The position numbers and the translations under genes were made by a program. Under the pieces are notes generated by a model, which had not been told where the DNA came from, did not search any database, and saw only the letters and a program-made list of their open reading frames with translations. A stretch of DNA of 64,000 bases from Zygnema circumcarinatum SAG 698-1b (Eukaryota > Plantae > Zygnematophyceae): positions 2,914,001 to 2,978,000 of the forward strand of contig CM074812.1 of assembly GCA_037447605.1 (NCBI GenBank), in the 5' to 3' direction. The number at the start of each line of letters is the position of its first letter. Position 1 is the first letter of the stretch. Shown piece after piece: positions 2,053 through 35,500 of this stretch.

Positions 2053-2371
2053 NNNNNNNNNNTCTCCCTCTCCCTCTCCTTCTGCCTCTCCCTCTCCCTC
2101 TCTCTCTCCTTTTGCCTCTCCCTCTCCCTCCGTCTCCCACAATCCCTTTCCCTCTTTCTCAATCCCTCCTCTCCCTCAATTCCTTTCCCTCTCCCCCTCG
2201 GCTCCTCCCTCCGTCTCTTCCACTCCTTCTCCCTCTTCCTCTCTCTCTCTCTCCCTCTCCCTCTCCCTCCATGTCCCCTATTCCTTTTCCCTCACCCCCT
2301 CGGCCCTTCATCCGTCTCTCCCACTCCCTCTCCCACTGCCCCTCCCACATCACATTCCAACCAAAACTCGC

Positions 2372-5009
2372 TCAGTATAGCGAAACCTCCCTGTTGAATA
2401 TCCATGAAAACTTGGTCCTCCTCTCTCTCTCCCTGCCCTTCCTCTCCTTCCTCTCCCTCGCTCTCTCCGCCAACTTCCGAATGCGAGGTGGTAGACCTCC
2501 CACATACTCCTGCGCTCTCCTTCCCTCCTCTGTGAGTCCTTCAATCTTTTCAACATTCCATGCTTTTACCAAATGCTCCATAATGTCTGCATAGTCTTCT
2601 GCAGTATACACTCCCACTCGTTGGGCTACCGATGAAAAATCGTCGAAAATATTCTCATTTTCTCCATCATACATAAAGTGAGCAGGCATTACTATCTGCT
2701 TCTTCATCATGTCTTCAAAGGCTTGCATAGCTCCGGAAGGGTCCAACTCAAACAGCTTCTGTACTATCTTAGTATATGCAATTTCATGCCTCTTCTCATC
2801 GGCTGCAATGATCCCACATATAATTGCCAATTTTTCATCTCCAAACTCTTTGGCATGTCTGGCAGTGTTTCCATGGGAGACAAAAGTTGCACGCTCTTGA
2901 AATGAAGTGTATACAAACCCCAAGTAGGGATTGTTTTCGGTCTTTATGTCCTGCACAACCGAGGAAGAGAAGGAGAGTATTTGAGACAGAAACGGTTGAA
3001 TACAGTTTGGAATATTTGTGTTGGGTTTGAGGTTTTCCTTGTTTTATCGGGGAGAAAGGGAGAGAGAGGAGGAGAGGGGAGAGAGAAGGGGGGAGAGAGG
3101 GGGGAGAGAGGGGGGAAGAGAGGGAGAGAGGGAGAGAGGGAGAGAGGGAGGGAGAGAGGAGGAGAGGGGGAGAGATGGGGGGAGTGGGAGAGAGGGAGAG
3201 GGAAGGAGAGAGGAGGAGAGGGAGAGTGAGAGGGAGAGTGAGAGGGGGAGAGAGAGGAGAGGGGGAGAGAGATGGGAGAGAGGGAGAGAGGGGGGGAGAA
3301 GAGGAGAGGGGGGAGGGGGTAGGGGAGAGGGGAGAGGGAGAGGGAGAGGGAGGACGGGGGAGGGAGAGGGATGGAAAGTGGGAGAGAAAGTGGGAGAGAA
3401 AATGGGAGAGGGTCTGAGGTCTGCGGTTTGCATAGAATGAGAGACACGTCAGTAAAAAGCGCTGGCATAAACTTTAACCCCATCACAAGACCAAAAAAAA
3501 TCAAAAAATGTACTTTGTAAACAAGCAGCAAGACTCCCCAGAGATCTCAAAAGAGAATAACCTTTTACTTAATCTTAACCTTTTTTTAAATTTAATTAAA
3601 CACTTACCATTCCAGAGCCCATGAGATATTGAATGGTCTTCTCCATTGCCTTCATATTCACTCTCCCCGTGAGATACAAATACTTATTCAAAAGATCGCC
3701 ATGTCGATTCTCCTCCGCCGTCCATCTGCGAGTCCAAATTGCAAAGGGAGAGAGACTTGCTCCCGACTCATCTCTCACTCCATCAAAAGTATTCAACATG
3801 GTTTGATATGTGGGGAGAGCTTCCTCTGTGATAGTATCCCCCACTAAACAGACCAAATAATCATCTGGAAGGTTCGAAGATCGCTCCCTTAGCTCTTTAA
3901 CTTGGTCTAAAAAGTCTTCATTTTGAGGGTGAGGGAGGTAATCCTGAGGTTGCCAGCTCTTCTCTACCGGCTTAAGAAGGGGAAGGAGAGTTTCTTCTGC
4001 CCAGGGCTGCAAGTGGTGAACAATTTCGAGTTGTTTTGGAGAGATTGTGTGAGTGAGAGGCTCTTTGGAAGCAAATTTTGGACCCTTTTTTATGAGAGTG
4101 GGCTTCTCAGTTTCAGTCACAATGGTCCTGCACCAGAAAATGGGTCAAAATTCGAACTTTCAGAAAGGGAATGAGGAAACTAATCTCTCTTGAGGTTTTC
4201 CTTGGTTTATAGGTAAAAAAGGGAGAGAGGAGAGAGAGGAGAGGGGATGGGGAAGGGGGAGGGAGGGCGAGGGGAAGAGAGGGGAGAGGAGAGGGGGGAG
4301 AGAGGTGGGGAAGAGAGGGAGAGAAGGGAAGAGAAGGAGAGAGGAGAAGTGGGGAGAGAGGGCGGAGAGAGGGAGAGAGGGGGGAAAGGGGGAGAGTGAG
4401 GGAGAGGGAGGAAGATACTTCACATTTAAGAGACTTCAAGAAACATAGAAACTTGAAGAGCGCCAACAACAGTAAAACCGTAAATCCAAGAACCAACAGA
4501 AAACCTTTCCACACAAAGAGAGTAGATTGATGGCATCTCTCCCATTAATCAGACCTCCAATATCTCCCGCAACAGCAACCATCCTCACCTCCTGAACCAC
4601 CTCCCTTCCTTCCCCCCCAGGGAGGGAGAGAGGGAGGGGGGTAGCAGAGAGCGATTTTGGATTCGTGGACACTTCCTTCCAAGATGCAAATTTTGTCTCA
4701 GATGGAAACACTGCCAGGCATCCCAAAGACTTTGGTGATGCAGAACATTGCATCAAGAAAGATCATTCTATGTATACAGCACTCTCTCCCTCCCTCCCTC
4801 CCTCCCTCCCTCCCTCCGCCTCTCTACCTTGCAGGCAGAGTCCCTGTCATCTTCGTCTCCCCTTTGTGGCCTTTCACTCCCTTCCTTCCCACCACCCGCC
4901 TACCTCCTCCAAAGTCCGCCACGTGGCCCAATCCCATTCCCCCCCGAACCACCTTCCATGGCTCTGCCATTGCAGCAATGGCTGCTCCGACCGTCCACAT
5001 GCCTGCCAT
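2372..5009 (-). CDS. SAD: Plastid soluble acyl-[ACP] desaturase (stearoyl-ACP desaturase family), 3 exons, about 426 aa
   Basis: Exons 5009-4828 (transit-peptide-like, ends AG|gtagag), 4127-3608 (tgcag|G...ATG|gtaagt) and 2950-2372 (tgcag|GAC...TGA). Phases are compatible and the total is 1281 nt. Diiron motifs [20 protein letters not shown] and DEKRH are present, plus a C-terminal FSWIFNREV. The intron at GSGM|D matches the usual plant SAD position. The exon 1 start is the least certain part. Confidence 0.95.
4655..4742 (+). pseudogene. Inverted fragment of an acyl-ACP desaturase coding exon inside SAD intron 1
   Basis: Plus strand translates [28 protein letters not shown] versus [29 protein letters not shown] in SAD exon 3. 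About 80% nt identity by eye, with one 3-nt gap. Confidence 0.85.
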
Positions 5010-5739: not shown

Positions 5740-5830
5740 TTTAGCCAATCATGGCCCGCCACGTGCAGTTTTTTGTCATTTGAAGTCAATATTGATGACG
5801 TGGCGTGTTATCATTGGTTGGTTGTTTTTA
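5740..5830 (-). promoter_or_regulatory. Candidate SAD upstream elements (CCAAT boxes, G-box/ACGT)
   Basis: agccaatc, gccacgtg, tgacgtgg and cattggtt cluster about 750 bp upstream of the inferred ATG. Confidence 0.3.
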
Positions 5831-33956: not shown

Positions 33957-34737
33957 GGGGGCGACTATTTACAGTGTCCTTTTTCTGAATGTAGTGTACA
34001 CTTTCGCCGGGCAGCAAAAAAAAAGGATTTTTTTGGCGAAAAATGCTGTTTGATACTTTTCAGAATAGATACAGACCTTTTTTCGTCGGATGTACGGATG
34101 GTGATTTGAAATGTACGAAGCGCGCGCGTCTACAAGGTATAAGGGCGCAACACGTGGAGCGACATGATTGGTCGCAGCAACATATGACGTGACAAGTATG
34201 TTTGGTACCGTGACGTGACAAAACGAGACGCGAAAAAAGTGGAGTCCGCGGACGGCAGTCGGAAATGGCGGGAATTAAAACTGACAGATTTTTCCTGAAA
34301 CACGCTACGTTATGTGCCCTATCTTTTTCTGTCAGTTTNNNNNNNNNNGCGGGAATTAAAACTGACAGAAAAAGATAGGGCACATAACGTAGCGTGTTTC
34401 AGGAAAAATCTGTCAGTTTTAATTCCCGCCATTTCCGACTGCCGTCCGCGGACTCCACTTTTTTCGCGTCTCGTTTGTCACGTCACGGTACCAAACATAC
34501 TTGTCACGTCATATGTTGCTGCGACCAATCATGTCGCTCCACGTGTTGCGCCCTTATACCTTGTAGTCTCGCGCGCTTTGTAAATATCAAATCACCATCC
34601 GTACATCCGACGAAAAAGGTCTGTATCTATTCTGAAAAGTATGAAACAGGATTTTTCGCCAAAAAAATCCTTTTTTTTGCTGCCCGGCGAAAGCGTACAC
34701 TACATTCAGAAAAAGGACACTGTAAATAGTCGCCCCC
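33957..34737. mobile_element. Non-autonomous foldback DNA transposon (MULE- or hAT-like MITE) with about 350-bp TIRs and an 8-bp TSD
   Basis: Termini GGGGGCGACTATTTACAG / CTGTAAATAGTCGCCCCC with near-identical long arms. Flanks are tttatcgg (33949-33956) and tttttcgg (34738-34745). The empty site tttgtcgg is present in the opposite arm of the large inversion, near 35600. Confidence 0.85.
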
Positions 34738-34859
34738 TTTTTCGGTCGTAATGGCGTCATTTTCTTTCGCCTCGTCCCTTTTGCTTGTCGGATCTGCCAT
34801 TGGCTGACGGCGGAAAACTTTGTCCTATTACACATTCGGTTTTAGTCGGCTTACTTGAA

Positions 34860-35500
34860 CCAATCAGTGCTCGCCACGTGTCGGCCACGTTGTCCTCACG
34901 TGATCGTCGGTAATTAGCTCCGAGCTGGAGGCCACGACCGGTGGCTGCGTGCCACGTGGCACGAGACATACAGGTGATGTGTGGCATGGACACGTGACTG
35001 GACAGAAAGTATGGATTGCCACGTGGCATCATATAATTGGAAAATGTCATCGTGGCAGTCACGTCAGCCACAAGTTGTCAAAAAGCGTCTTAGCACACTA
35101 AACGACAAAATGGAATTCCAAAAGCCGAGTACCGGTAGGTGCCCTTACGCCGAGCAGGCGGTAAGGCGGCTAAAGCCCACCAATGAACGCCGGCCACGTG
35201 GTACCCTTTAACGTGGAAAATCAGTTTCCCGGCAGCCGTGAAAAACCGTTTTTCTTCCCAATTGGATAGAAAGGCCTTTCAGATGAACCAATAAGAGACG
35301 GCCAATGTGGGCAAACAACACGGGAGTGTCGGCTTAAACGAATCCGAAAGTGCCACGTGGTGATCTCCGCTTGACAATTAATGAGTGGCTCTCGGACAGC
35401 TAAATTGTTTAAGATGCAATGGGAGTGCGGCACGTGTTCTGCGACCTGTCTTTTGTGCACACGTGGCATACTTTGATTGGAGGCCATGGACCAAGCGAAA
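34860..35500. promoter_or_regulatory. G-box-dense centre of the inverted duplication; candidate shared bidirectional promoter region
   Basis: About ten CACGTG plus further ACGT cores (gccacgtgtc, gccacgtggc x2, gccacgtggt x2, gacacgtg, gcacgtg) and several CCAAT, between two divergent ATGs (33530 and 36017). Confidence 0.5.

Follow-up and report, generated by a model that had tools for sequence, protein, structure and literature searches.

An acyl-ACP desaturase gene of Zygnema circumcarinatum with phenylalanine and isoleucine in the pocket floor, a predicted palmitoyl-ACP desaturase

Introduction

Soluble acyl-acyl carrier protein (acyl-ACP) desaturases with altered substrate pockets are the context for the gene described here, which lies in a 64,000-nucleotide stretch of DNA from the streptophyte alga Zygnema circumcarinatum SAG 698-1b (GenBank assembly GCA_037447605.1, contig CM074812.1, forward-strand positions 2,914,001 to 2,978,000; this whole stretch is referred to as the window, and positions are counted from its first base). 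The gene encodes a desaturase with phenylalanine and isoleucine at the positions corresponding to L118 and P179 of the castor enzyme RcSAD1. The castor enzyme (structures 1afr and 1oq4) has the same fold, aligns in register at approximately two-thirds identity, and its iron ligands and D280 are identical. The pocket floor is lined by M114, L115, T117, L118, P179, T181, G188 and F189 (castor mature numbering, used throughout), and the substitution L118W increased relative specificity for 16:0 approximately 80-fold (PMC7772203).

Experiments back a bulky residue at position 118 as one way of reaching 16:0 preference, with W118 in the cat's-claw enzyme and F160 in the Phaeodactylum enzyme as examples (PMC7772203). 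The latter, PtAAD of Phaeodactylum tricornutum, has Phe at the equivalent of castor 118, as does the Zygnema protein. It makes 16:1 delta-9, and the combined changes F160L, A223T and L156M revert it to 18:1, tying its output to residues of the pocket (PMC7772203). PtAAD is unlike the Zygnema protein in that it keeps P179, has A at 181 and L at 114, and belongs to a different lineage; the same P179/A181/L114 pattern was seen in P0030, the representative of a diatom-like cluster. Further natural 16:0-ACP delta-9 desaturases are cat's-claw Muc-PAD (W118) and Arabidopsis AAD2 and AAD3, which have F at the equivalent of castor 181 (PMC7772203, PMC6554319). In these, as predicted for the Zygnema enzyme, a bulky floor residue shortens the pocket, but the residues or positions used are others and the proteins are angiosperm seed or endosperm isoforms.

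The family has also evolved delta-4, delta-6 and 14:0-specific members by few changes in the pocket or on the surface, and D280 is linked to the regiochemistry of desaturation. The castor double variant L118F/P179I of Cahoon and colleagues (PNAS, 1997) reportedly gained a preference for 16:0-ACP, and the eight-residue floor of that engineered variant equals the floor of the Zygnema protein.

Results

Alignment to castor desaturase and the pocket floor

The acyl-ACP desaturase gene is intact, nuclear and transcribed, and consists of three exons on the minus strand that encode a precursor of 426 residues. Its parts are given below together with the codons of interest, which were read out from the castor alignment. 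A slash marks a splice site.

Exon 0, 4828..5009, minus strand: ATG at 5009, 60 codons and 2 bases, presumed plastid presequence
Intron 1, 4128..4827, minus strand: GT...AG, 700 nt, with a CT-rich array and an inverted exon 2 relic inside
Exon 1, 3608..4127, minus strand: castor residues 4-177, including E105, E143, H146, M114, L115, T117 and F118; donor GGAATG/GTAAGT
T102 (castor M102), codon ACT, 3833..3835, minus strand
F118 (castor L118), codon TTT, 3785..3787, minus strand
Intron 2, 2951..3607, minus strand: GTAAGT...TGCAG, 657 nt, phase 0, between M177 and D178, mostly a CT-rich low-complexity array
Exon 2, 2372..2950, minus strand: castor residues 178-363 and the TGA stop, including I179, T181, G188, F189, E196, E229, H232 and D280; acceptor TGTGCAG/
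I179 (castor P179), codon ATA, 2945..2947, minus strand
D280, codon GAC, 2644-2642, minus strand, retained with respect to castor

The encoded protein is the precursor of a soluble diiron acyl-ACP desaturase with an N-terminal presequence. Splicing of the minus-strand blocks 4126-3608 and 2950-2372 by script gave 365 residues, with no stop before the terminal one. In phmmer searches, exon 1 (4126-3608, 173 aa) matched castor desaturase 1oq4 with an E value of 2.7e-68 and exon 2 (2950-2375, 192 aa) matched castor desaturase 1afr with an E value of 3.2e-81, while the solved delta-4 and delta-6 relatives ranked below the castor delta-9 structures in the same searches. The two exons cover positions 2-143 and 144-325 of PF03405, meeting exactly at the splice site, with scores of 224 and 277 bits where the curated cut-off is 22.7, a full-length family match.

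Residue numbers are offset from castor mature numbering by a constant +4. The residue readout found all six iron ligands (E105, E143, H146, E196, E229 and H232) in the castor register, as the initial annotation had them, and both E-x-x-H motifs are intact in the translation (EENRHG and DEKRHE). The alignment had been described as free of indels, which holds for the register through all of the ligands but not for the C-terminal part, where a 6-residue insertion after approximately castor 341, within a GA-rich microsatellite, is the sole indel. Besides this insertion, the natural algal protein differs from castor in carrying T102, F132 and F269.

The floor positions 114/115/117/118/179/181/188/189 read M-L-T-F-I-T-G-F, compared with M-L-T-L-P-T-G-F in castor, leaving six of the eight residues unchanged; K180 was also read out. 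F118 and I179 are thus present in place of L and P as first proposed, and the ATA codon of I179 is where it had been located. The TTT codon of F118 had been placed near 3804 and is in fact 17 bases away, at 3787-3785. The readout also agrees that D280, T181, G188 and F189 are retained, and this combination is a sequence proxy for delta-9 regiochemistry.

Distribution of the F118/I179 pair

In the sequences compared, the F118/I179 pair is rare and absent from ordinary algal enzymes, yet is not unique to Zygnema. It was found in none of 120 chlorophyte desaturases, where 117 have L118/P179, two have I/P and one has F/L. Among 120 streptophyte matches to exon 2, those that cover both sites include 81 with L/P and one with F/I, from Phtheirospermum japonicum. 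Matches to a profile that included both exons (n=104) were L/P in 100 cases, and F/I occurred only in a Solanum cluster. When all retrieved green-lineage sequences of at least 250 residues were taken together, 292 of the 316 were L/P, nine were F/I and two were W/I, the Solanum share of the F/I count being inflated by the deliberate addition of cluster members. Every F/I or W/I sequence among the 316 is from Orobanchaceae or Solanum. Positions 118 and 179 are each 95-96% invariant across 299 sequences. Whether the pair might be common in ordinary algal stearoyl-ACP desaturases is answered by these counts, with 0 of 120 in chlorophytes and 0 of the 4 nearest streptophyte-algal relatives.

The exact signature M-L-T-F-I-T-G-F is found in Orobanchaceae paralogues of Phtheirospermum japonicum (GFP95611.1) and Castilleja foliolosa (KAL3642116.1) (P0380, P0489), which share the Zygnema floor but belong to an angiosperm clade and have an independent origin. 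A group of Solanum proteins with the annotation 'stearoyl-ACP 9-desaturase 6-like' (P0392, P0490-P0498) is akin to the Zygnema protein in combining I179 with F or W at 118, but carries A181 and further changes. From their sequences, both groups look like candidates for short-chain specificity. To our knowledge, none of these Orobanchaceae and Solanum F/I proteins has been assayed.

Relatives and divergence of the Zygnema protein

L118/P179 is present in each of the nearest relatives, the transcriptome proteins P0390 (75% identical), P0391, P0394 and P0276. Canonical enzymes overall are 70-75% identical to the Zygnema protein. No protein of this alga was among the protein-collection matches obtained with a chlorophyte query, with exon 2 in a 223-residue frame, or with a profile built from P0276 and both exons. 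In a quick maximum-likelihood tree the Zygnema desaturase is sister to P0390 (SH-aLRT 95) among streptophyte algae, whereas the Orobanchaceae and Solanum F/I proteins fall in the land-plant (angiosperm) clade. These separate positions indicate that F118/I179 arose independently in the alga. The convergence on the laboratory design put forward in the initial annotation therefore stands as to a real pair of independent origin, but its uniqueness was overstated, given that Orobanchaceae and Solanum also have the pair.

The M-to-T change in the motif GD(M)ITEE, which had been singled out as unusual, is real but not peculiar to Zygnema. T102 is common to all four of the nearest relatives, and since these have a canonical pocket, M102T is on this comparison a lineage trait unconnected to the pocket change. 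It was accordingly rejected as a part of any change in specificity.

The Zygnema protein is more diverged than its sister, with a terminal branch of 0.45 compared with 0.21 for P0390 and 28-36 unique changes compared with 14-25. It deviates at approximately 10 of some 150 positions that are at least 90% conserved, where the relatives deviate at 4-5, and L118F, P179I, I173M, L269F and L278I are among these deviations. Such divergence fits a paralogue with a changed function but is not proof of one.

The first exon and the introns

The block 4126-3608 is preceded by a lone base, G4127, that directly follows an AG acceptor, and an upstream exon is therefore needed. Exon 0 has an open frame that starts from an ATG in good context, and a stop in the same frame lies upstream of it, at 5186-5184. 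Its donor, AG/GTAGAG, is in phase, and the split AGG codon is completed by G4127. The last residues of exon 0 align with KGYKGEAVMTATLPPRT of P0390, and the same motif occurs in P0391 and P0394. The C-terminal motif of exon 0 thus matches the MTATLPPRT of these nearest relatives (conserved as MT.TLP.R), and the predicted N-terminal extension is 61 residues ending at this motif. Exon 0 was accepted on the ATG frame, the phase-fitting donor and the end motif shared with P0390, P0391 and P0394, and its acceptance gives the precursor of 426 residues. The gene span of 2372-4127 first assigned is right for exons 1 and 2, but the exon with the start codon and presequence, at 5009-4828, lies outside it.

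Both introns are canonical GT-AG introns. The position of intron 2 is conserved, and the products of open reading frames of approximately 190 aa on many streptophyte genomic contigs begin at the same point (...Q/DP.TEN). Long CT-rich low-complexity arrays occupy parts of both introns (minus strand, ~3030-3440 and ~4195-4420), and each finishes in a short tail of similar, AAACAAGGAAAACCTCAA-like sequence, as would result from two insertions of one repeat family.

Assembly context of exon 2

Positions 758-2052 and 2063-3360 of the window, each approximately 1.3 kb, are 99.8-100% identical and flank a gap of 10 N at 2053-2062. This repeat is the unmerged overlap of two contig ends. A second copy of exon 2 at 1070-1643 falls within the overlap and was for that reason rejected as a tandem gene duplicate. 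Two bases, at 2470-2471, distinguish the exon 2 copies, and the 2-nt deletion in the other copy would shift the frame, whereas the copy within the gene reads RKLAERA with the conserved C-terminal FSWIF in frame. The I179 codon appears as the same GACATAAAG in the redundant contig copy, at 1643-1635.

Read support and expression

All 13 words sampled from the segment 3725-3865, which includes the T102 and F118 codons, are present (fraction 1.00) in 20 sequencing runs of this organism, which stem from eight or more studies and include the RNA-labelled run X1. These word matches give indirect support to the F118 codon, for which a check in reads had been proposed. Of the words sampled from 2372-4127, a fraction of 0.57 is present in run X1. 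Words wholly inside exons make up approximately 0.60 of that segment, and the X1 fraction, which amounts to nearly all of the exon words, is what a spliced transcript would give. Three further RNA-labelled runs with the same species label, X9-X11, hold 0.00-0.01 of the words of the gene. This near-absence hints at conditional expression and hence at a specialised copy, though strain or library differences could be another cause of the contrast with X1.

Predicted substrate and alternatives

We favour, with modest confidence, the reading that the Zygnema enzyme is a delta-9 palmitoyl-ACP (16:0) desaturase making palmitoleate. Phe for Leu118 and Ile for Pro179 would create a bulkier floor than that of stearoyl-ACP desaturases and shorten the pocket by approximately two methylene units, so that it would be palmitoyl-ACP, and no longer stearoyl-ACP, whose C9-C10 lies at the diiron centre. 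As D280 and the six other floor residues are unchanged, the double bond would be expected still to form at delta-9, with 16:1 delta-9-ACP (palmitoleate) as the predicted product, elongation of which would lead to cis-vaccenate (18:1 delta-11). The gene resembles a paralogue that has diverged and is possibly expressed under certain conditions, and not a housekeeping desaturase.

Several points weigh against this. Cotton GhA-SAD5 and GhA-SAD7 have variant pockets and still prefer 18:0 (PMC6554319), and pocket residues therefore do not appear to predict specificity in every case. The diatom evidence concerns a triple change and not F118 alone. The I179 codon is supported by its presence in both contig copies and, in general terms, by DNA words, and the excess in relative rate was significant with two of five outgroups. 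If the gene were the only desaturase copy in the genome, it must also supply oleate.

This last point leads to the main rival, a dual-specificity enzyme acting on both 16:0- and 18:0-ACP that would serve as a main, possibly the only, plastid delta-9 desaturase and provide oleate with some palmitoleate. That reading is a serious minority alternative. The window contains no second desaturase gene, the ligands and D280 are all canonical, as are six of the eight residues in the floor, and variant pockets can retain 18:0 activity (PMC6554319). However, L118/P179 in all four nearest relatives argues that a housekeeping role needs the canonical pocket, and the virtual lack of the gene's words in X9-X11 is unexpected for a constitutive desaturase. 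An ordinary stearoyl-ACP desaturase, in which F118 and I179 are neutral or compensated and 18:0-ACP is still preferred, is improbable. It would find a parallel in the cotton isoforms, whose altered floors leave the 18:0 preference in place (PMC6554319), and would suit the overall identity to canonical enzymes, but it is at odds both with the near-invariance of positions 118 and 179 and with the altered specificity that bulk at 118 brought in every tested case cited in PMC7772203.

Two remaining explanations are less likely still. The delta-4, delta-6 and 14:0-specific members of the family make it conceivable that the shortened pocket favours 14:0-ACP, or that the bond is placed elsewhere than delta-9, but with D280, T181, G188 and F189 canonical, and just two residues separating the pocket from that of a delta-9 18:0 enzyme, this is very unlikely. 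Least likely of all is a decaying paralogue or assembly artefact that yields no functional enzyme. The excess of changes at conserved sites would be in keeping with decay, and the redundant exon 2 copy with its frameshift of 2 nt adjoins an assembly gap. Yet the open frame is full, the splice sites are canonical, every ligand is present and exon words are found in an RNA-labelled run; the copy with the frameshift represents the end of the adjacent contig where the two overlap, and the copy in the gene keeps RKLAERA...FSWIF.

A wider proposal goes beyond the preferred palmitoyl-ACP reading and is correspondingly more tentative, falling somewhat short of an even chance. A streptophyte alga may have evolved a dedicated delta-9 palmitoyl-ACP desaturase through the two substitutions of the 1997 castor variant, reportedly a product of structure-guided design, and the same solution may have been reached at least twice more independently, in Orobanchaceae and in Solanum.

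Other features of the window

No other desaturase-like gene was found within the window, where the sole other trace is the exon 2 relic in intron 1. This relic, at 4656-4754 on the plus strand, is a degenerate, inverted segment of 99 nt with 81% identity to exon 2 over 88 nt and 65% over 34 aa. It contains an indel and a changed SHGNTA motif, and a small inverted duplication is its probable origin.

Eight exact CCAAT-N9-CCACG sites occur in the window, compared with 0.02 expected. Six of them are at 34153-35480, and the other two form a mirror-image pair upstream of the desaturase gene:

CCAAT-N9-CCACG pair, 5745-5763 (plus strand) and 5799-5817 (minus strand), 740-810 nt upstream of the ATG

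This pair is likely to be a promoter element, a role that we infer.

Significance

The Zygnema gene would add to a known kind of variant-pocket desaturase, and on the sequence comparisons the palmitoyl-ACP reading is a reasonable one. Even if it were confirmed, the understanding of the enzyme family would stay unchanged. Literature searches found no earlier description of a palmitoyl-ACP desaturase from this group of algae, and confirmation would make the Zygnema enzyme the first from a streptophyte alga. It would also reproduce, in nature, a classic case of rational enzyme redesign. Alongside the Orobanchaceae and Solanum proteins, the enzyme would then allow a clean test of whether the residues at two floor positions suffice to predict chain-length specificity, a question that matters for the annotation of desaturases and for the engineering of omega-7 oils. 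If the wider proposal of repeated independent origins is true, the pocket floor would represent a small, predictable chain-length 'code' that evolution has reached repeatedly.

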